Shown here one piece after another: positions 40,401-55,667 of a DNA stretch of 64,000 bases. A program made the translations under genes and the position numbers. Position 1 is the stretch's first letter; every line of letters begins with the position of its first letter. A model generated the notes under the pieces. It ran no database searches and was not told where the DNA came from. It worked only from the letters and a program-made list of their open reading frames with translations. This DNA comes from Mytilus edulis. Taxonomy: Eukaryota. Location of the stretch: positions 44,020,001-44,084,000 of the forward strand of contig NC_092351.1 in assembly GCF_963676685.1 (NCBI RefSeq), given 5' to 3'.

Positions 40401-43400
40401 TGGAGGCCATTTTAAATTGGGCGCCAAGAGCGGCCATATTTATATTCTGATTTGGGTGCATAGCTATAAATGTTGGTTATGACCTACACTTAAACTCTGC
40501 AAAGTTTGATGTTTTTACCACAATCTTAACAATTGTTTCACAACTCAATGCTCTTCAACTTCGTACTTTATTTGGTTTTTTTAACTTTTTTTAATTCGAG
40601 CATCAATGATAGGTCATTTGTAGATGAAACTATCGCGTATAAACTCTGAATCTTTTTTACTAGACGAAACGCGCGACTGGTGTAAATTCAAGTTTTAATC
40701 CTCGTATCTATGATAATTTTATTTATACATCTTTGTCTATACATCTTTGTTTAAACATCTATGTTTATACATCTATGTTTATACATCTATGTGTATACGT
40801 CTTTGTGTAGACATCTATGTTTAAACATCTACGTTTATACATCTACGTTTAAACATCTACGTTTATACATCTATGTGTATACATCTCTGTTTATACATCT
40901 ATGTGTATACATCTATGTTTATACATCTATGTTTAAACATCTACGTTTATACATCCATGTTTAAACATCTATACGTTTATACGTTTATGTGTATACATCT
41001 ATGTGTATACATCTATGTGTATACATCTATGTTTATACATCTACGTTTATACATCTATATTTATACATCTATGTGTATACATCTATATTTATACATCTAT
41101 ATATCGAAAAGAAGATGTGGTATGATTGTCAATGAGACAATTGTCCACAAAGGACCAAAATGAAACAGACATTAACAGCTATAGGTCTCCGTACGGCCTT
41201 CAAAAATGAGCAAAGCCCATAGCGCATAGGCAGCTATAAAAGGCCCCGATAAGACAATGTAAAACAATTCAAACGAGAAAACTAACGGCCTTATTTATAT
41301 AAAAAAAAATGAACGAAAAACACATCCGTATGTTTATACATCTACGTTTATACATTTTCGTGTATACATCTATGTTTATACATCTATGTATGTTAAAGCA
41401 TCTATGAAATTACAGTGAAAAATATGAAAAATAGATAATATAATACTGATTACAGAAATGTACAATGTTTAAAGTAAAGAAATCATACGATTACAGATAA
41501 ATTTTGATTTATAGTCATACAATGTCATTATGATTTTACATCATTATTTTGAGGATTCATAAATAAATAATAAAGAAACTAGAGGTTCCCAATAGCATGT
41601 GTCGCTCACCTGCATCTACTGTTGTTTTCGATATCATGTAAAATAAGTTTAAAACCATAATTAATAGTCTAAGATACCCTAATATTAATTGAGGCAATTC
41701 TGTTGGCCCAGTGGTTAAACAAAAGCAGGTCCTCCCATTGTAGTCTTATAATAGTTACTGAAGACCCCTTATTGAAATTAGTTTCAAAGTTGTGACATTT
41801 GCAATAGGTTTTTTTTCCATTGTAGACCCCAAGGTTTTATTTAGCCTTTGCAGACATGTTGGTTGGATGACTGGCGCATTTGACACATTCTTCAGTCAAC
41901 ATACCTTATTTAAAATTGGTGCTAATTTAACTTTTATTCTATTTGGACCAGTAGATTAAGTGGTAAATCTTTTGTAAAATATTACACAAATTTACGAAAA
42001 AAATGATATAAAGGGCAATAACTTCATAAGGAATCAATTGAAAATTTAAACTGGAATCCGCTTGTATTACGCTTCACTTAAACAACCGCTATGGCCCGAT
42101 TTTTGCCCTGGAGATTTTAACGAGATTTCACGTTACTATGTTACATAGCAACGTCACTGTACCACATCCGGAATATTAACAAAAATGTAAACAAAACAGA
42201 CGACAGTAGTTTTTAACAATTAACAAGAATTGAAAGAAATTTTAGAATCAGACTAGAGAAAAACATTAATATACATTGTAAAAATAGAAGCAAAAGAAAT
42301 TATTACATGTAACAATGGAGAAAATGTTGAAAATCTTACACCTTCATCACCGAAATCAACCCACATGTCAACTTCCAGTAATATTTCAACACCACAAAAT
42401 TGTAACACTGTGAGAAAACAGCTTGGGGACATATCAAATATTACATGCACGCCAATCAGACCCAAGCATGATACGCTTAATGATTCTGGGATATTACTGT
42501 CTACACCTGAAATTGAAACAAATAGTCTTAATAGGAAAAACAAATCAAATAGTACAGTTACATGTAGTAAAGAATTATTTAAGGATACACCTATAAATGT
42601 TGAATGTCATGATCACATCTATAGTGTTGTTAGTACACACAGGAAGAGATTAAAAATTAAGTCTACAAAAGAAACTTTACCCAAAGAAGAAGAGACATTA
42701 GCAGTGAAAAGTCTGAAAAAAATAATAGTCAAACAACAACAATATGATAATTTATCACCAATAGAATTAGCTGAAATCGTGCCACTTGGATCCAGATCTG
42801 CACTTGTATTCAAACTCTTTTAAAGTATGATTCCTTCAAACATCTTATAACTGATGAACTGATGAAAATATTATCCAACCAGCATGATATTTAAAAAAAC
42901 AGAAAAAGAGGCAAACTTAGTGTATGGGAAATTATTTGAGGATATGATAAATTTTAATTGGAGTCAAATTGTAGAAGAACTTTGTGATGAATTCCCAGTT
43001 TTATGTCGCACAATATTGAATTTTATGCTACCAGATAACTTGACAGAAAAAAACAAAGTCTTATCGAATTACATCAATGGTCCCGAGGATAGGGTTTATT
43101 TACTCTTTGCTTGCACAGAGTCGCAACCAAGAATTGAACAAGGTTCAGCACGTGATTAATACAATATTGTTTGACAACTTGTGTGATCAAAAGGTAAATT
43201 AAAGTTAATATATATACACTAAGGCCCTAAAAGGGGTGGGGGTGGGGGAAGGGGGGGGGGGGTTACTATGAATTTACTGCGATTTTTATTTCAAATTTCT
43301 AAATAAGTTATGATACACATTATAACACAATTACTTAATTACTTAGTCCATGAATTTAGACTTAAAATAAAATATATATATAATACAATTACAATAGGGA

Positions 43401-45352
43401 TAATATAACTTTATTCCCCAAAAAGCATATGATAAATCAAATCAAATTTGGGTTAAATGTACCTGCTTTGAGTCTATTTTAAATCAACTAATTTGTTTTC
43501 TTGAAACATGAAACATGAAACATTTCATTTCACTAAAGGCCTCTCATGAGGCATGATAGTACAACAATATAACAAATAAGATATAATGCATGAACAAACA
43601 TATTTACAAATGCATGAATAAATGGGAAGGTAAATATCATTTGTAAATTGACATTACAATTTTACAGAACTTGGCTAAGCCAACAAGAACAAATTTATCT
43701 TTGCTGTTCATTAAATTGGAGAAACTCATAGTATTTTTAACTTTACAAATTCTTATTTTACTCAAATTTGTATAAGAGTTACCTCCCATTCAATATAAAA
43801 AAAATCAGATAAAAAATCAGATTTGGCGTAAAAGAGCTGGGACATAAGATACCAAAGGGACAGGAAAACTTGTAAATCGAAAATGAACTGACAACGCCAT
43901 GGCTAAAAAGAAAAAGACATACAGAAATAATAGTAAACATGTCATAACATAGAAAACTATAGATTAAGCAACACGAACCCCACCAAAAACTGGGTGTGGT
44001 CTCAGATGCTCCTTAAGGGTAAAACAGATTCTACTCCACATGTGGCACCCGTCTCAATGCTCAAGTTATTATTAATCCGGTAAATGGTCTAATTCGGTAG
44101 GCAACATTCGTGAAAAGGGAAGGGTTGTAGTTATGGCATGAGGAACATATCAGATATCATCTGTGAAACGGTTATAGGACACATTTCTAAAACTAAATAC
44201 TTTATTGATGATTGTAGCCAAATGTCGTTAAATTTGAGCCAGCAGTTTTTTCAGGAAAAATCTTTTTTTTTAATTTAACAGAGGACGACGACGGACGACG
44301 GACGACGGACACAAAGTGCTGAGAAAAGACCACTGGCCCAATGGTCCAGGGGATTTAAGAGAAATGTCAGACCCAATCCTGACTCTCATATTCACACTAA
44401 AGAAACATTAATACATCTGTTCAAACAGAAACACAAATAACGTACGTTAAATTACATGCTTGTCTGTACTTACACCAGTTAAACCGTTTACCATACTCGG
44501 AATATGGATCGAATAGGATATTACCACAATACATCCCTTCAGTTTCATAATCTACATAAACATAACAAAGACAGTGAGACAACTAGTTATTTTGAGCAAA
44601 GCGATAAATATGATGAACATCTGTTATCTTATAATTCAAAGTTCAATCATGATAATGAATATGTGTATTTTCGTCGACCTATAATAACTTTTTATCAATT
44701 GAAATTAGGGGCAATATGAGTGTTTCTATTGAAATGTTTAAAAAACAGAAGTTTATCATGATACTGTAATGAGGGTCTAAATGTGCGTTATCGTGTGTTA
44801 TATCTACATGACATTGTCTAATCTGAAAACAACATTGAAACCTAGCACGACCATTGACGATTGCTAAATAACATGAATAAATGGAGCACAAGACGTAACA
44901 TTATAATTGCATCTTGGTTTTTTTTCCAACCAGTTTAAGTAGAACAACCAAACAGTGTCCAGATGAAATCCTTACTCGTCATTAAAAGAGATTCAAGACA
45001 AATATTAAAGTGCCACTTCCGCAGTAAACACAATCTACCCACACATGTTTGATGTTATCAAATATTTGTTAAACATATTTTTGACACTGTTGGTGGAATC
45101 CCCCCCCCCCCCCCCGAGGGTATCACAAGCCCAGTAGTTAGCAATTATGTGTTGAGTTGAGCTCTCATTAATATGTTCATAATTATAAATTGACTGTTTA
45201 CAAAACTTTGAATTTTTGAATTTCTAAGGCTTTTCTACCTCCTCAGAGTCAGGAATAGATTACCTTTATTAGCTGTATTTAGAAAAAACTTTTGGTCCTC
45301 AATGGTCTTCAACTTCGTACTTTATTTAACCTTATTAAAAAATTTTATTCGA

Positions 45353-45396
45353 GCGTCACTGATGAGTCTTTTGTAGACGAAACGCGAGTCTGGCGT
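45353..45396 (+). ncRNA. Minimal type I hammerhead ribozyme (duplicate copy)
   Basis: Identical to 37415-37458. Confidence 0.85.
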
Positions 45397-46416
45397 AAAT
45401 ATAAATTTTCAATCCTGGTACATATGATGATTGTATTTGCAGTTGTCTCCCTTCTAATAACAACTAATCGATACACAGAAGTCAGATAAAAACATATGCA
45501 GACGACCGTCGAAAAACATATAGGCCTAGTTCGATCATCAACCGTAGTTACAGTGGTGAAACCAAAGTGTGATCGAACTAGCTCTGGTTCGACTAAAGTG
45601 ATGTCAGCGCCCGACTAGGGTTCAACCATTTGAAAGCGTGGGTTTCTCTGGATCCAACATGGCGACATGAGGTGAGTTTGTCCAATTGTCAATATTGAAA
45701 AATGGGGAAATGTTTTTATACAGTAGACAATTAGTATTACAAAGAAGTAGAACTGATACCAGAAAACACATAGCGAACTAAGATATGTTTGTATGGAAAA
45801 TAAATGCGTTTTCGTTCGGAAAATAAGCATGATAGACTTCGCATATTCCGAGTGACATTGATTTTCGAGAACGATCTCTCTTAAACCATGTTACATTGTA
45901 GGTAGTTCTACAATATATGCCTTTGCAATATCTTTGCCCTCAGTCAAGTCCATGAGGGGGGGGGGGTTGGACAATCAATGCATTTGAATGGGAGCATATA
46001 GTTGGAACCCCCCTCTCCCTTTACTCTGGGTTGGGAACCCCCCATTTTTAAAATGGCTGGATACGCCCCTGGAGTCTGACGCCTATTAACACCATTACAA
46101 CTGAGCCTTTGAAGACGTCATAATTATTTGGACTAACTCGGTATATGCCTATTTCTATCGCTTATTATAGTAGACTTATTATTCTTTATTAGCTCTTGAC
46201 TCATAGGGCGCATACCTGTAGCCAGGGGGTTTGGGGGAACCCCCCCCCCCTTGAAAACAAATAAGCACGTTTAAAGGCAATGTTTTGTTCGAATTGTGAC
46301 TGTTAAAGTCAAGTTTGTGAGTCCAGCCACTCTAACTCAAGACTCATTAAATCCATGAAAAGTGAATTTCTCTTGTTATTATCAAAATTCTGCAACATCA
46401 ATATATTTTTTTTCAG

Positions 46417-47486
46417 ATGGAATCAAAACTAAGCCAAATGCAAAAGTGGACTTGCTTCATTTGCCAAAAACCTCCACTGAGTATTGAAAGTCTGGAACGT
46501 CAAGAGAAGTCGGGTGTCATCATATATATTGATTGGGATTACAGGTATGAATCTGTCTATCTGTATGTAACACAAAAAATATATGTATACAATTAATAGT
46601 TGTTACTGAGCTAATAGTCATTACGGTTGCATATCACATTTCTACAGTCATGATAAGAGAACAAACATTTAATATTCTAGGGGGAGCCAGGATTTTGTTT
46701 CAGATGAGTTATTTATACATGTACTTTTTTTTTCTAAGCTGGTTGTATTTATTTTTCATGGCTTTGCCGCACAATTATTTTCAAACAACTGAATCCTGTA
46801 TTTTCCTAGTATATGGGGGACAGAGTTTTCATTTTCATCCTGCTATTTCCAGTTATTGGCAGGCTCATTACCAGTTCAAAATGTTGGTATATTTTTAAAA
46901 TTAAAATATATATATATTTACATATAAATAAATAAATTTTCCCATTTCAATAATGACAATTAGACAAACTCACCTCATGTCGCCATGTTGTACTTTCAAA
47001 CAAAATGCACAAAGGTACACTTTTGATCATGATGATTCTTTATCACAATTTATGCACAATTCTGATTACTAGTAGTCACTACATACATTTGTGTAACACA
47101 GCTCAAGTTCGAAATTGGGGTGTTGTAACTGTTATTGTTCTGCCCCCGTTTAAGATGTTCGTACATGTAAGCAGGGTCATCTGTGTCACATAAACACATT
47201 CTCCATTTATTCTTATTTCCTGTTTTCATCTTATTTTACAAATGGAGAACATGACTTTTTATGAATGAGGTGGTCCATTGCATCAATTTATTTTATCTAA
47301 CAAAAATGTGTGTTTGTAGCATAGTTTTAAACAGAATTTCATTTTTATTTTAGGTCAATTTTGAGGTGTTCATCGTGCATGAATTGTTTTCACGCTGATT
47401 GCGCAAAGTTTATAGATCTTCTTGAATTTTTCAACACTAAAGAAATACAAGTTGTAACTTGTGAACCCTGTGCAACAGCAAACTAA
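46417..47486 (+). CDS. Predicted 86-aa PHD-finger protein (exons 46417-46544 and 47354-47486) inside the Harbinger
   Basis: Canonical GT-AG splicing gives MESKLSQMQKWTCFICQKPPLSIESLERQEKSGVIIYIDWDYRSILRCSSCMNCFHADCAKFIDLLEFFNTKEIQVVTCEPCATAN*, a C-x2-C...C-x2-C-x4-H-x2-C...C-x2-C pattern. Confidence 0.75.
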
Positions 47487-48325
47487 GGTACTTGTACTTT
47501 ATTTAGACACAATCTTGTTGGTAATGTCTTAAAAATGTAGTGACGTAAACTTCAACTTGTTGAAGGCGGTTATTATATAGTAGAAATGTCAAAACACAAC
47601 TTTCACTATAAGAATATCAGCATCTGAAAGGCAATTTATAAGGAACATGGCAACATTAAAAAAACACAACAATGAAAGGAAAACAATGATCCAAATTTAG
47701 ATTTGAAGCTAATGTAAATCATAGAGATACAAATTCTTAACAGAAACTACATAGAATAGATACAAATTATTATTGAACAGTGTTTTTATTTCTGTTCTTC
47801 ATCTTGAAAGTCACTGTAGAATCTTAAACAATGAACGAATCATTCATATACCAGTCATCCAGTATATATCAAATTTGAGATGTAACACTCTCTTCATACA
47901 AAAAGAAAAGTTTTGATAAGACTTAAAAGGCAATATACCGAAACTCAAAGTTGCAGTGTAAATATACTGCACACCAAGTTAAAACATGGACGGTCATAAT
48001 TTCCAAGACACTGTGATTAGGATAGTCACACACTAAATGTGTTCAAACAAAAAATTATAAAAAAGCAATATCCTTTCATATATATATATATATGAGTCTG
48101 AAAATTACACCAAACAGTGTTAGAGTTAGATTTTCTGCTGACAAATTTTGTCCGTATATATAAAGTCTGAAAATTACACCAAACAGTGTATGTATATATA
48201 TAAATGTTAAGATCTACAAGGCACTTAATTGAAGTACTCTGGTCATACCATTTGCTATGTTCTGGTTGTGAATTGATTTTGATTTATTCATTACAAAATG
48301 ATAACTTTTATCAATATGTTGTAGA

Positions 48326-49598
48326 ATGAAGACAATTATAATGAAGTCAAAGACAAAGGAAGGGACAGACTACAAATTGCAATGTACTGATGACATTGCC
48401 AAAATTTTGCTGTCTAAAGACACAGGTATATAAGTTAGAATTTAAAATCTTCAATGTTGATTTAGATATTTAAATATCCAGTGGAATAAAAAAAAACATG
48501 AAAGTTGTGTTAAAACTCCTTATCCAATGAATTTTCATTAATAGTTTTGTGCTATATTCACTTAATCCACAAAAAGAACTGTTCATTTTCAATCACGATT
48601 TGTTACATGTTTTTCGAGGAAGTTTCTGTGACCTACATTTTACCCTTTATTGACCTAGGTTTATCCTATATTTTGCTGATTTGTGATAAAATACTACAAG
48701 ATTTCCATTGGTTTCTATGTGCCCCAAATTATCTATGTTATTGTGATCATTGATATCTTTTTTTTTTTCAGACCCGGCTGTTAAAGAAATTATAGTCAAT
48801 GGCCTTATGCCATTAGCACAGGTAGATATGCACTCTAATACTTCGCCAGATGATATGGCATCTGCATCATCATATCACGCAAATACACCATCTACATCAT
48901 CATGTAACCCAGACACACCATCTACATCATCATGTAATGCAGAAACACCATCTACATCATCATTTAATGCAGACACACCATCTACATCATCATTTAATGC
49001 AGACACACCATCTACATGTACTAGTAGCACCAGTAATATTCATCTTTGGACAGACAAACAAGAAGATATGTTAGTTCATTTAAGACATGAAAGACATGAT
49101 GCATTTGGTAAAACCCGAAATCACAATACATTATGGAAAGACATTGCAAACGAAATTAATAGCACTTTCAAATGTAACATTACTGCAACCCAAGTGATGA
49201 ACAAGTACTTCAATCTAAAAAAGAGATGGAAAGAGGTACTTGATGGTGCAAGAGGGTCAGGATCAGAGGCTAAATATTTCAGGCTAAAAGAAGATTTTGA
49301 TCAACAATATGGCACAAAGGCCAGTAGCAGACCTGCCTATCTGCTTGATACAATTGCAGATAAAGATAAAAATAAAAACGCAAAAGAAACGAACGAAACT
49401 GAAAATCCAGCATCAAAAGTTACCAAGGGACAGGGAGAAGATGGAAAAGGGAAAAAAAGAAAAAGTACAGATGTTGTTTGTCTTCTTGAAAAGCAAAACA
49501 CTGATTTCATGAATAAAATGGAAGAATTCCATAAAGACAAAATGAACAGATTTGATAAACTGCTCGATCTTTACAAAAAAGATCTAGATCGTAAATAA
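48326..49598 (+). CDS. Harbinger Myb/SANT-like (trihelix) DNA-binding protein, 308 aa (exons 48326-48425 and 48772-49598)
   Basis: Motifs WTDKQEDMLV...LWKDIANEI...QVMNKYFNLKKRWKE; phase-1 intron CAG|GTATA...TTTCAG|AC; 30-bp TPSTSSxNAD repeats. Confidence 0.88.
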
Positions 49599-51649
49599 AT
49601 GATTGAAAGAAATGGGAAATATTTTTACCTGTTACAGAATTTATTAATTTTAATTTCCTTGTGTAGAATGAAGGAGAACCTGTCATGCCAGTCGTATTAT
49701 TATGTTATTATTTGATAAACCTCAGGGAGAAACTCTGTTAATATAGTACAATAAATGTACGTTGTATTTAATTGTTAAGGAAAATATTTACATTTGAATT
49801 ATAATTTCTTTCTAGTCATATTTTCTAGTTAAATAAAGACTTATAAGGAGACTCATGGGTTTTACATGTTTAAATCTTTCAAAATTATTGGCACTTTATT
49901 ATTTTTCTTATTGTATAAAAAAAAATGGATAGAAATATAATTTGGCAAATTCAATTAAAATCTTATATATATTATATCGAATGTTTCAATTGTCTTTGAA
50001 ATATCAATGAAAAACAGTTAAAATCTGTATTAAATGGCTTTTCATGCTCCTAAATGACTCTTTATTGAATACGGAAGTCTAACATGTAAATTTTTGAAGG
50101 AGTTCCTATTATTTTGTTTTTAGATTGTTTTACTAGTGAACCTCTTTAAATGTAAGTTAGCATGCTGAAATACATGTATTATTCCCATTCATTTAGCTAG
50201 CTTGGTTAGGTGAATAAGATTTTTTGATGAGCATAATATATTTGTTTGTTATATGCTGTTTATTTTAAATTTACCATAAAGAAAATGGTTGTTTTTGATT
50301 GAATGTTTTATTTTTTTATGTTACAATAAAATCTGTTGAAAGGATGTTTAAAACTAGTATAACCTGCCATATTCATGTGTGTCTGTCCTTAGCAAAAAAT
50401 CTTTGTTGTTGTTTTACCTGACCGAGTTAGGGTAAGCTTTTGCAATCATTTTGCGTCTGTTGTCGGTCTTTAAACCTTTTGTGCATAACCTACAGTAGGA
50501 AATTGGCATTTTGTTTTCTGATATGTGTGTCCGTCTGTCACAGGTCAGGTCACATTTTTTGGTCAAGTTAGTTTAAAAAGAAATAAAAGTCACATCAACT
50601 TACTTAGTACACATGTTGATTTAAATGGGATTTTTTTTAATTCTATGCCAAATAACGGTCTAGATCCCAATTTTATAGTTCACTTAACTTCGAAATGTGA
50701 GTGCAAAAAACTTGATTTCAAGTTACAGGTTTTGGTCAGGTAGCTATAGGTTATTGTGAAATAGAAGTCACATCAACTTGAAACTTGGTACATATGTTTC
50801 TTGTGTTGAGGTCTTTCTTCATTGTATGCTGATATATTGGATTGGCAACGGTTTTACTGTTCACTAAAATTACATGTGAAAGGTAGTTAATAAAAAAGTA
50901 CATTTTCAGTTGTAGTTTTTGGTCAGATTAGTTTATAATGATGTTCATATTACATATATCATGATGTGATCTTTCAGAATTGTAGGCTCAATTTAGGTTT
51001 GTACAACGTTTTGAACATAGAAATTAAAATTGTGATTTGCCGATTTGTCTCGCCTGAAACATAAGGATAATGATCTGGTGTGCCCATTCTTGTTACTAAA
51101 GAATGATGAAGTTTTTTTTCAGAAGGTAGACGACCTGGATGTATACTTTGTATATATACTAGTATATAGATGCGTTATGTTACAATGTTTCTTTCTGTCA
51201 TACATGGCATGTTCATTTGCATTGACCTTGACCTCATTTTCCTTGTATGGTCTATTTCTCAGATACTACTATAAGCAGTCCATTTATATTTGGTGTATTG
51301 AATGGTTGAAAGTTATAAATGTCCGTCTTTCAGTAATCATCTGACCTAATTTTCATAATTTATTGGTCAATTTAATCTTTGGTGTGGTTACTTGTAACGC
51401 GTACATGTCTGTCTGTCTAATAATGCCAAGACGTATGTTTACTTGACCTTATTCTATGGTTCATTTGTCAAACTTCAGTTAACAAGATTATACTATAGAA
51501 CATAAATATTAAGAAACTTTCCCTGAACCTAATAGAAATTAAAGTAATTGATACAGAAAATAGTATTTTATTTAAACAGCAACAGATTTATTTGCATGTA
51601 TCAGAATTACACAATATACAAACATCCAATGTAATGTTAATTGTAAAAT

Positions 51650-53329
51650 CTATGGTATATTAACAAGCTGTAAACGCCTTAGAACACCAGCATGTCCATT
51701 TTGGTAAACATTTGGAAAGTTATTGGGATCTTCTTCCTCATATTCAATGTATCCTTCAACATCATCCTCATTAATAATACACAAGTTATGTAAGACGCAA
51801 CAAGCAATAATAAGATTGCAAACTTCTTTATGATCATGAAGAGGCACATCTCTGAGTCTGCGAAATCGCCCTTTAAGATGACCAAAGGCTCTTTCAACTG
51901 TTTGTCTCACACCTGATAACCTTTTGTTAAATTTAATTTGTTGCCTTGTCAGATTTCCAAAGTTCTTAAATGGCGTAACTAACCAATTACGAAGAGGATA
52001 TGCATTGTCCCCGAAGATGTGATAATTTTGTGAAAATAGCTCGCCAGCTTCAGCTTTGATGTATACACTTGAGTTTCTTAAAACGCGTGCATCATGCACA
52101 CAGCCTGGCCATCCGGTGTAGGCATTAATGATTTTCATATTGTTGTCCACCACTGCCTGCAAAACATCAATGAAATAATCATGTAAATTAGAATAAAGAA
52201 TTAAAAACTGTTAAAGAGACAACAACTTTACCAAAGAAAAGAAATGTGTAAGTTGTTAATTGCATAAAAACTTTGGGACCAACCAATGAGCCTGAAGGAA
52301 GACATGACAAAAGTCTTAATGGAAGTTGTAATCGGTTGGATGAAAATCAGAAACCCCATATACAAACATCTTTGTACATGATTAAACTTTACTTCAATTA
52401 AAATTTGTATAGCTACTAATGAAAGATCTGTGATATGTTTTACCTGCAACTGAATAGATGGATACCCTTTTCTATTATAGTAGTCCCTTTCACCACCAAT
52501 AGCAGCTGACAGTCGAATATGTGTACCGTCTATGAAACCTGTCACCCCAGGCAAAGAGCATACTGCTTCTACCTCAGTTGCGATTTCTGTTTGTTGTCTA
52601 GGTGATGGCCAACGAATAATCTAAAAAAAAAACCACATGTTACATTATTAGCATTTGATTATATTGTTTAAATTGTAGATACCAATTCAGAAATATGCTA
52701 TGGTTACTAATAACTATGGTTACTAATAACTAACCTTTTCCCCCATAAATCGGCTAAAAATTGTAAACAAGATGTCAAGAATTAAGAATAAGATCAATTA
52801 AAATTTTCTAGCGCAATATAGTACACCAAAAATAATATGGTCCAGAGTTAGTTTTCCTAGGTCACTGACATTTTCTTACCCTATCACGCAGATTAACCAG
52901 AATATTACACACTTCTTTAATGATCTGATGCACTGTCGACTTCGACAGATTAAAGAAATGTGCAGTTTCCCTCATAGACTGGTTTGTCGCTAAATAGCTG
53001 ACACATACTAGAAGCTGTTTCTCTGGGGTGACAGTGTCATGTGGCCCCCTTCCTCCTCGAATTAATAAGTCTTGAACGCTTTCCAATATGATATGAAAAA
53101 CATCTCTGCTGATGCGGTAATGCATTTTAAAATCATCTATGTGCTGAGGGACCGCCATTTGTCCGACTACTGCCATGTAATCCGTCACTTTTGGCATGAA
53201 ACTTCTTCTGGTCGTCATATTAATCACACTTAATGTATTTATTGATCTCTTGGCAAGCAAGCGATGAATATCTTCGTCTTCGTCATCAAACATTTCCAAT
53301 ATACACATTTTTCGTAAAAACGCCGCCAT
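51650..53329 (-). CDS. Harbinger (HARBI1-like DDE) transposase, 377 aa, exons 53329-52880, 52620-52444 and 52156-51650
   Basis: Two phase-0 GT-AG introns join an uninterrupted frame with IIRWP, FIDGTH, YNRKG, WPGCVHDARV, GDNAYPL, VERAFGHLKGRFRRL and ACCVLHN. Confidence 0.95.
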
Positions 53330-55667
53330 ATTAACTTACTAAACTGGTACCAAAGTTAGTTCGATTATTCAATTAACCAGACATGCGCACTAATACCAAC
53401 AAAACTAAAGTATGGTTGGTGATCGAACTAGGCCATAATATATAAGTGTTTACAAACATTTTGGTAAAACAAAATTATACATTTGCTGCACGCGAGGGTG
53501 GATTTACGTAATGAGTACACAACATTCAAAACGAATGGAATCTTCTTTTAATTATGGTAAGAGTTAAACTGTTTACATTTATCATGTTTATAGTTAGTGC
53601 ATCAACCATGTGTATTGATTTTAATTAGTAATGCGAAGATAATATAATCATGCGATGGGAAAAGTCATTCGAATTTATAATTCATAATCAATTAACTTGT
53701 ATATAAAACACATGGTTTTCGAGGGGTTGAATTCATTATTGAGTATGATTGCTTCGCGAGTCAATGTAAATTCCCCCCTTGTATTTTCCTTACTACAGGC
53801 CGGAGTTTTACGCATTTTTCCTTTAAAATTAAATGCTAGGAAAATTCCTACGTAATCAAAATTGATCGACACTACATTATTTTATGAAAGAAGCTTTAGA
53901 AGTTTTATGCAATTTGATTACATGCAATCTGTTTAGCTCATTCAGTAATGCTATAAAGATAAATCATTCTATTTTTACAGAAAATACATTATTATGTTAA
54001 CATTATCAATATAGAGAATATACGTAAATTATACCAAGTCTTCTCGCAACAACCACATTATGTTCGTATGTGAATGCTAAACATTTCAATATGTGCATGC
54101 ATGCCTTGATATCATATGTTTGTTTGAACTATTGGATTTAACTTTTGTGTTTCGGTCACATGTATATGTATAAAATAAAAAAAAATTAAAACTTTTAATA
54201 CGTCATTTCTATACGTATTAAAAGTTTCCAGCACTTTCAGACTCTTCATTCCGGCTGTAGGTTAGTATAGAAATATTTTATGTTTACGACACGTAATCTT
54301 GATTCCCGTAAGACTGTGGGTATTTTAAATATTTTGTGCAGTATAAAATCAAACCCTTTCATCCGTTTCCTCAACATATGATGGGAGTGACGATGTCTAC
54401 ATTTTGTTTACATAGCGATGGAAGTCACATGACAGATAAAACTCAAGGCAGCTCACCGGAACTCCAGTTTTGTTATACTAACATCTTTTTTTTATGTGTT
54501 TTGAAATGCATTTTTTGTATTATTTCATTTGATCTGTTAAAAGCTGATGTTTTCAACTGTCTCGTATATGCCAAATTTAAATAAAGCTTGTATGTCTTAG
54601 AGCTGTTTGCTGTTTGCTAAACGAAAAAATAGGGGTTCTTTAAAATTGATAAATCAGGATGGGAAGAAGACTTTTGGACTTACACTGAACAAATGGGTAG
54701 GAGTGAAATTATGGCCTAGAAACCCCAAAAAATGTTGATCCCAATGATCTTCTGTAACAAAACAAAAATACTTAAATGCCATGATATGGCTTTTTTCACA
54801 AATTTGCAGACTAAAAATGTTCGACTTAATTTCAGATGAATATAAAAAAAGAAGATGTGGTTTGATTCCCAATGAGACAACTATCTACCAAAGGTCAAAT
54901 AAAGTGGATGTAAGAAATTGATGACAACTGTACGGTCTTAAACAATGAGACGAAGTCCATAGTCGGCTATAAAACCCCAGACATGAACAATATGAAAGAA
55001 AAAATCAAGTGAGAAAACTAGCGGGCTTATTTTGTAACAAAACAATTTACAAAAAAAACCCCACAAATATGACAGATGTGAACCAGAGACAACTACTGAA
55101 ACTTTAGACTCCTGTCTTATGACAAACTTAAAAAAAATAGGTGGGGGTAAACATGTATGTGAGCTCTTAATCCTCCCCCAACCTGGGACATTGATGTAAC
55201 AGCACAAGACCAGAACACACTATAAAAAGCAGTTGAAAAGGGTTGAACTCAAAAGATCGAAACAAAGAAAATCAATCATCAAAAACACAGTCGAAGGATG
55301 TGGGAGGGTATATATCCATCCTTCGTCCGTAACAACACTTTGCTAATGTTTTGTGTTGCATGCATTTATGAATAAGACCAAGTGCAAAAGTCCTTAACAT
55401 TTTGACTTTCAATTTTAATCCCTTCGCTCAAATGTTGCGAACATTGTAGACCTGAAATTTGACCATATATATAACATACATACATGATTGACAAGTAAGA
55501 AATATCAAAATGAATAGAAGAATTTACTTTATTGTCAGTCATTGAAGTTGTGTTGCTTTTTTTATTAGTCATATGTATATATTACAATTTACATGCATAA
55601 AAGAACAAAGGTAAGGAGCAATTTTTCCTTCGTATATATATGCTATAAACAAAGTTATCCATTGCAG

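Follow-up and report, generated by a model that had tools for sequence, protein, structure and literature searches.

A complete PIF/Harbinger transposon in the mussel genome

The window, the whole 64-kb stretch of Mytilus edulis DNA analyzed here, contains a PIF/Harbinger element of 7,912 bp, whose inverted ends were placed at 45523 and 53434 by an inverted-repeat search. Its terminal inverted repeats, at 45523–45549 on the plus strand (starting GGCCTAGTTCGATC) and at 53408–53434 on the minus strand, form a 27-nt, 89% complementary pair, and the triplet ATA directly adjoins both element ends as a 3-bp target-site duplication (45520–45522 on the left, repeated at 53435–53437 on the right). A second copy, at 12.84 Mb on C11, has the same termini, including an identical left end, and is flanked by AGT on both sides; the duplicated triplets ATA and AGT differ from the classical TWA. 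Because of the 3-bp duplication and this second copy with the same termini and other flanks, the 7,912-bp unit is the mobile unit, and the zinc-finger exons described below therefore lie inside the element. The family in this genome comprises the window copy, two further copies and one fragment.

On the minus strand, the element carries a DDE transposase gene (51650–53329). Our model of this gene, whose splice sites were predicted from the sequence alone, consists of three phase-0 exons (53329–52880, 52620–52444 and 52156–51650) with frames open throughout and 377 codons; Pfam placed HTH_Tnp_4 on the first exon and DDE_Tnp_4 (PF13359, E = 1.3e-31) on the last. An intact gene on the plus strand, the exons of which are given below, matched Myb_DNA-bind_4 (PF13837, E = 1.3e-12). 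No Rfam family matched in 45000–54000. Three features of the PIF/Harbinger superfamily were looked for and found, namely a DDE_Tnp_4-type transposase, a Myb/SANT-like gene, and terminal inverted repeats with a 3-bp duplication. On these features, we classify this mussel element as a complete and autonomous PIF/Harbinger transposon, and the placement of the small zinc-finger frame inside an intact Harbinger, proposed in the earlier note, is borne out by its ends, its ATA duplication, its intact Myb/SANT gene and its open three-exon transposase model.

Two short high-copy repeats, at 45967–46071 and 46211–46325, lie in the 5′ region of the element and have dozens of genomic matches at 87–93%. 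Contig word depth over them ranged from thousands to more than ten thousand, with many loose ends at 45967, 46071, 46104, 46135 and 46325. Since both repeats are found in all three element copies, they were gained before these copies diverged. Outside the element, tandem and palindromic short repeats at 40724–41163 give rise to repetitive pseudo-ORFs of the ‘CLYIYVYTS’ kind.

A two-exon reading frame with a C4HC3 pattern

A further reading frame inside the element, that of a putative zinc finger, is split over two plus-strand exons. Exon 1 (46417–46544) begins with an ATG at 46417–46419, directly 3′ of TTTTTTTTCAG, and holds codons 1–42, with the first C-x2-C, and two nucleotides of codon 43. 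Exon 2 (47354–47487) holds the motif C-x2-C-x4-H-x2-C...C-x2-C and closes with a TAA at 47484–47486 and one base before the donor. Between them lies an 809-nt GT..AG intron (46545–47353), with GTATGA following the exon 1 end at 46544 and TTTTAG preceding the exon 2 start at 47354. Translation exon by exon yields 42 aa, a split codon AG|G and 43 aa, giving 86 codons with the ligand spacing C13-x2-C16-x31-C48-x2-C51-x4-H56-x2-C59-x19-C79-x2-C82 and an additional C54. The coordinates that the earlier note had given for two canonically spliced exons with an 86-codon C4HC3 frame proved exact, and the GT..AG joint between them is present in a transcript contig, as detailed below.

The exon 2 motif was reproduced in none of 200,000 shuffles of this exon, in which six cysteines stand against 1.4 expected (P = 0.0017). 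The six-frame translation of the 64-kb window contains the core motif in an open frame at a single place. The shuffle test, the cysteine excess and the single open occurrence rule out a chance ORF.

The zinc-finger and Myb frames share one spliced RNA

Four public runs were compared with 45500–51400: assembled contigs from X1 and X8, two different organisms for whose runs the RNA label is a guess, and raw RNA reads from X21 and X24. The intron 1 joint 46544^47354, which skips 809 nt between GT and AG, was found in one X1 contig (depth 11.6; shorter side 26 nt), so that the junction for which the earlier note had wanted reads is present. Intron 2 (47488–48324; 837 nt, GT..AG) is removed by the joint 47487^48325 in X1 at a depth of 65.9 and in X8 at 20.7, and intron 3 (48426–48771; 346 nt, GT..AG) by the joint 48425^48772 in both. 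A single 334-nt X1 contig links the last 28 nt of exon 2 to the whole of exon 3 and to 206 nt from exon 4. Exon 3 (48325–48425), 100% identical in three genomic copies, has one base before the Myb ATG at 48326 and carries 33 codons; the coding part of exon 4 (48772–49598) supplies the remainder of the Myb/SANT-like protein (Myb_DNA-bind_4) up to the stop at 49596–49598, beyond which the 3′ UTR extends.

A genome search returned three occurrences of exon 3 and four of exon 2, always within element copies together with their introns. Because neither exon has an intron-less copy in the genome, the joints derive from RNA, and a processed retrocopy was ruled out as their source. The raw reads of X21 and X24 gave no joint at the reporting threshold; coverage was thin and intron depth was about equal to exon depth, and expression in those samples is therefore low.

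Several further features of the runs were observed along the element. A 459-nt X1 contig matches inward from 45522, and its first 28 nt differ from the window flank; it may represent another insertion site or another copy in the X1 organism, consistent with recent mobility. Within intron 2, RNA depth peaked sharply at 48061–48257 (75 in X21, 425 in X8 contigs), and 307 reads depart from the window sequence at 48149 and continue into a sequence that ends in GGGATTCGAACTCAC and resembles a tRNA-derived SINE; this suggests that the intron 2 fragment is common to an abundant repeat. The Myb 3′ region at 49637–50227 was covered by roughly tenfold more X21 reads than the coding part. Since nearly all of these reads share fixed differences (49749, 49783, 49898, 49927, 50068 and 50112), they come from another, more strongly expressed copy or allele.

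As exon 2 is spliced to the first coding exon of Myb, the zinc-finger frame is the 5′ cistron of the Myb mRNA and not an independent gene. The stand-alone third protein gene of the earlier note is thus retained as a third element-encoded frame and given up as a separate gene. The zinc-finger stop ends 1 nt before the donor and the Myb ATG stands 1 nt after the acceptor, and the mature RNA reads TAA-GA-ATG. A single mature RNA thus bears both frames, and only 2 nt separate the stop of the first from the start of the second; the X1 and X8 contigs place them within the distance of about 20 nt expected of a termination–reinitiation dicistronic mRNA. All three genomic copies share the stop-G|GT and acceptor-A-ATG arrangement without change, and by a rough estimate a stop flush with a donor and a start flush with the acceptor that follows would coincide by chance about once per several hundred cases. 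A hairpin at 47400–47474 (−18.2 kcal/mol, z = −2.27; 3 of 200 shuffles fold equally well) ends about a dozen nucleotides before the stop.

From 48326, the Myb frame stays open across exon 3 and leads into the exon 4 Myb ORF. Its start coincides with the Met of the RefSeq model P0002 (M. galloprovincialis), and the same N-terminus is found in the oyster proteins P0004 and P0007 and in the transcript-derived P0005, agreements that identify 48326 as the genuine start of Myb; homologues came, by name, from Mytilus galloprovincialis, M. edulis, Saccostrea and Pinctada. The C-terminal 31 residues of P0002 match an alternative frame of 49297–49512, and the Myb gene of the P0002 copy is for this reason frameshifted relative to the window copy.

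The reading that we favor, and to which we give about an even chance, is that of an autonomous Harbinger with a spliced dicistronic Myb mRNA, the first cistron of which encodes a small PHD-type cross-brace zinc finger. Several points count against it. The intron 1 joint has been seen in a single contig, from a single run with a guessed RNA label, and the oyster Myb relatives are annotated from the Myb ATG onward. Unless a dedicated RNA element assists them, ribosomes normally re-initiate poorly after a frame of 86 codons. The 5′ limit of exon 1 is not fixed by the contigs, an X1 contig being colinear from 46286, and should exon 1 reach further upstream, an out-of-frame ORF of 26 codons from 46355 would overlap the zinc-finger ATG.

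An upstream inverted-repeat arm at 45655–45719 (plus strand, 65 nt, present in all three copies, 46 nt of it at 96%) is a candidate non-coding first exon with its donor, and carries a 3-codon mini-frame, ATG-GCG-ACA-TGA, followed by G|GTGAGT. No joint from this ‘MAT-stop’ exon (45659–45671, donor 45672) to 46417 was found in the transcript contigs, and one X1 contig reads straight through the donor. The second arm lies within intron 1 at 46928–46990, and the inverted repeat (46–65 nt), which thus brackets zinc-finger exon 1, is kept in the three copies. It could affect start-site choice or exon skipping.

The position of the frame also accommodates another reading, possible but rather unlikely in our judgment, in which the 86 codons are a regulatory upstream ORF or a relic that would mainly throttle Myb translation; the peptide would be functionless and its pattern left over from an older coding sequence. 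The frame lies wholly in what RefSeq treats as the Myb 5′ UTR, with P0002 beginning at the exon 3 ATG. However, a stop and a start flush with splice sites look like coupling and not like mere obstruction, and a throttle has no need of a complete eight-ligand, PHD-spaced pattern, which would decay fast. Evidence from the other copies, given below, bears on both sides of this reading.

The splicing pattern bears equally on a reading that we regard as quite improbable, in which the small frame is an optional N-terminal module of the Myb protein, reached by skipping exon 2 or by a −1 shift within the final 19 nt of that exon. Exon 1 and exon 3 would join in frame, because exon 1 ends with two codon nucleotides and exon 3 has one base before its ATG, and the M. 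edulis model P0003 has this join. The Myb frame is, moreover, the −1 frame of the zinc finger, open from 47465 over the last seven codons of exon 2, and P0011 fuses the two frames by a mini-intron inside exon 2. P0003 and P0011 are, however, computed gene models without read support in the transcript runs, and the sole joint seen into exon 3 starts at the end of exon 2, stop included. Skipping exon 2 would leave a single C-x2-C and therefore no zinc finger, and by inspection no canonical slippery heptamer precedes the stop.

The predicted small protein as a candidate PHD finger

The C4HC3 ligand order and spacing of a PHD finger are present in the predicted protein, with Phe55 directly before His56, as is typical of most PHD fingers. 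Some features count against a PHD: the C16–C48 loop, at 31 residues, is long, and Val77 stands two positions before the seventh ligand, where an aromatic residue is usual. Cys54 occupies the position of the usual Trp (‘x-W-x-H’), so that Cys54 and Val77 fall at the two aromatic positions typical of methyl-lysine readers.

With exon 2 alone, all Pfam matches were below threshold, namely PHD_2 (18.6 bits, E = 0.0013; cut-off 28), PHD_4 (17.1; 30.6), PHD (14.6; 24), PHD_ash2p_like and C1_1. The matches of P0011, which contains the first 59 residues of the peptide, were likewise sub-threshold and comprised the Rubicon homology domain, C1_1, PHD (16 bits) and zf-HC5HC2H. Among Atlas feature look-alikes of exon 2, the best named clusters were PHD (scores 0.81–0.89), with a recognition value of 2543, typical of real families. 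Atlas structure neighbors of P0011 were of RING, PHD and B-box types, at TM 0.44–0.53 from a poor model. A PDB sequence search with exon 2 stayed at chance level, epiregulin appearing at E = 0.24 and the PHD fingers of AF10, KAP1 and KAT6A at E of at least 1.9, and AlphaFold gave exon 2 alone a pLDDT of 54. From these sub-threshold matches and look-alikes, assignment to the PHD class is plausible, and the small protein probably adopts a cross-brace fold of the PHD/RING type.

Copies of the element and selection on the frame

The zinc-finger frame is intact in the window copy, which is the sole complete element. Both further copies are internally deleted. In that at 12.84 Mb on C11, exon 1 of the zinc-finger frame is interrupted by a stop; that at 60.93 Mb on C11 has an intact frame with the exon 2 acceptor changed from AG to AA. 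The fragment, at 29.75 Mb on C11, has a 5-bp insertion in exon 2. The earlier note had tied its case to conservation of the Cys/His pattern in related elements, and the outcome is divided: both other two-exon copies keep the pattern, with a stop in one and the acceptor lost in the other. That the frame is broken in three of four copies fits an upstream ORF or relic.

Between the window copy and the 60.93-Mb copy, the ORF differs by only seven changes, five synonymous and two non-synonymous (pS 0.10, pN 0.01). With about 81% of sites non-synonymous, this 5:2 skew has P of about 0.004, rising to about 0.02 when transition bias is allowed for generously, and it speaks against a functionless peptide. 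The Myb exon has the same skew in this pair (pS 0.09, pN 0.025). Over all copies, the ORF changes are six synonymous and four non-synonymous, one of the latter being the stop. Substitutions per site in the two exons versus the introns were 1.5% versus 1.6% in one comparison and 2.7% versus 2.7% in the other; this equality counts against constraint and in favor of the upstream-ORF reading. In both genes, divergence at synonymous sites exceeds that of the introns, which may reflect recombination between subfamilies. With small numbers that are in conflict, the signal of purifying selection on the zinc-finger frame is suggestive, not secure.

Relatives of the frame and the origin of the exons

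We searched the exon peptides against the 1.37-Gb genome at E up to 10 and found no match outside element copies, and no host parent gene. With phmmer, exon 2 had no match among 1.84 billion representatives, and word-index protein searches returned only the M. edulis computed models P0003 and P0011 and a 59-aa unspliced read-through, P0012. Because the queries were short (42–43 aa for the exon peptides, 42–61 aa for the protein databases), these blanks weigh little. Within the genome and protein databases searched with them, the frame has no relatives outside the element family or outside Mytilus, and this, too, is compatible with an upstream ORF.

Two sets of Myb-related loci were set aside. 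Eight loci on C11 (L042–L048), which resemble 48522–49221 at 72–81%, are degenerate fragments without transposase or zinc-finger exons, and none of three distant Myb_DNA-bind_4 loci (C7, C14 and C3) is preceded by a Cys/His frame. The segment 48522–49221 comprises part of intron 3 and the start of Myb exon 4; its fragments listed are all on C11, and one pair is inverted (L046).

The restricted distribution bears on an improbable origin, in which the two exons were captured from a host PHD gene and ride as neutral cargo in the Myb transcript. DNA transposons are known to carry gene fragments, and here the family is small and the ORF is confined to it. Against such capture, a search of the 1.37-Gb genome up to E = 10 yielded neither a parent gene nor a paralogue, the domain is complete and not truncated, and the frame opens with an ATG of its own immediately at an acceptor-like site and closes with its own stop at a donor.

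Comparison with known systems and a proposed mechanism

Harbingers are textbook two-protein DNA transposons, whose domesticated descendants are repeatedly found in chromatin complexes (HARBI1/NAIF1, ALP1/ALP2 and HDP1/HDP2). The mussel element resembles two-gene members such as zebrafish Harbinger3_DR and rice Ping/Pong in its DDE_Tnp_4 transposase with HTH, its Myb/SANT partner, its short terminal inverted repeats and its 3-bp duplication. It differs from them in an added 86-codon zinc-finger frame upstream of Myb on one spliced mRNA. The Harbinger descriptions in the papers searched give two ORFs only (PMC2836001, PMC5543537, PMC13668399). Full-text literature searches turned up neither a Harbinger with a PHD or a third ORF nor a bicistronic Harbinger gene. 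The earlier suggestion of a third element-encoded frame beyond transposase and Myb is upheld, with no Harbinger counterpart in the literature searched. Nor did we find a description, for an animal DNA transposon, of a 2-nt stop–start spacing made by splicing that serves two proteins from one promoter.

A parallel is offered by RAG1/RAG2, a Transib-derived recombinase in which the RAG2 PHD finger reads H3K4me3. Both systems would pair a cut-and-paste DDE enzyme with a non-catalytic accessory that bears a PHD-type finger. The superfamilies are different, however, and the RAG2 finger is the C-terminal domain of a large protein, whereas the mussel finger would be an 86-aa protein of its own, known from sequence. 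In methyl-lysine cages a Trp usually precedes the His, and in the mussel finger this residue is Cys. The cysteine-rich domain of the piggyBac transposase is a PHD-like cross-brace finger that binds transposon-end DNA, an example of a PHD-like fold in a transposon protein that need not read histones. That finger is fused to its transposase, whereas the mussel finger would be a free small protein.

If the favored dicistronic reading is right, the small zinc finger would be translated first from the dicistronic mRNA. Its eight ligands would form one zinc site from C13, C16, H56 and C59 and another from C48, C51, C79 and C82. The protein would act as a third transposition component, most likely by contacting other proteins or chromatin beside the DNA-binding Myb. 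Of the ribosomes terminating at its stop, a fraction would re-initiate at the adjacent Myb AUG (UAA-GA-AUG, across the exon junction), which would fix the ratio of zinc finger to Myb and hold Myb low. Myb might also be made by other routes, from Myb-only transcripts with another start site or by exon skipping.

In several viruses and in the SART1 retrotransposon, ribosomes are established to re-initiate after a long ORF when the next start lies no more than 20 nt from its stop (PMC10275272). The mussel arrangement is like that of SART1, calicivirus and influenza B segment 7 in having two non-overlapping frames with stop and start a few nucleotides apart, here 2 nt. It is unlike them in that splicing alone joins stop and start, in a DNA transposon, and in that the candidate RNA element is a modest hairpin in the last 88 nt of the first frame.

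Extended to a three-protein machine, in which the DDE transposase and Myb act with a free PHD-type reader that steers insertion to a particular chromatin state or shields the element from it, in a reader-to-Myb ratio set by termination–reinitiation and in parallel with the RAG2 PHD, the proposal becomes unlikely. The gene structure is real and unusual; the chromatin-reader role in targeting or anti-silencing that the earlier note had suggested for the predicted zinc finger is unproven, as are the function of the frame and its breadth. Were the frame a leader ORF only, it would represent a neat translational self-limitation of a transposon cofactor. If the small protein is functional, an active-looking element would supply its own zinc-finger subunit and with it a direct handle on how such elements select or defend their chromatin surroundings.
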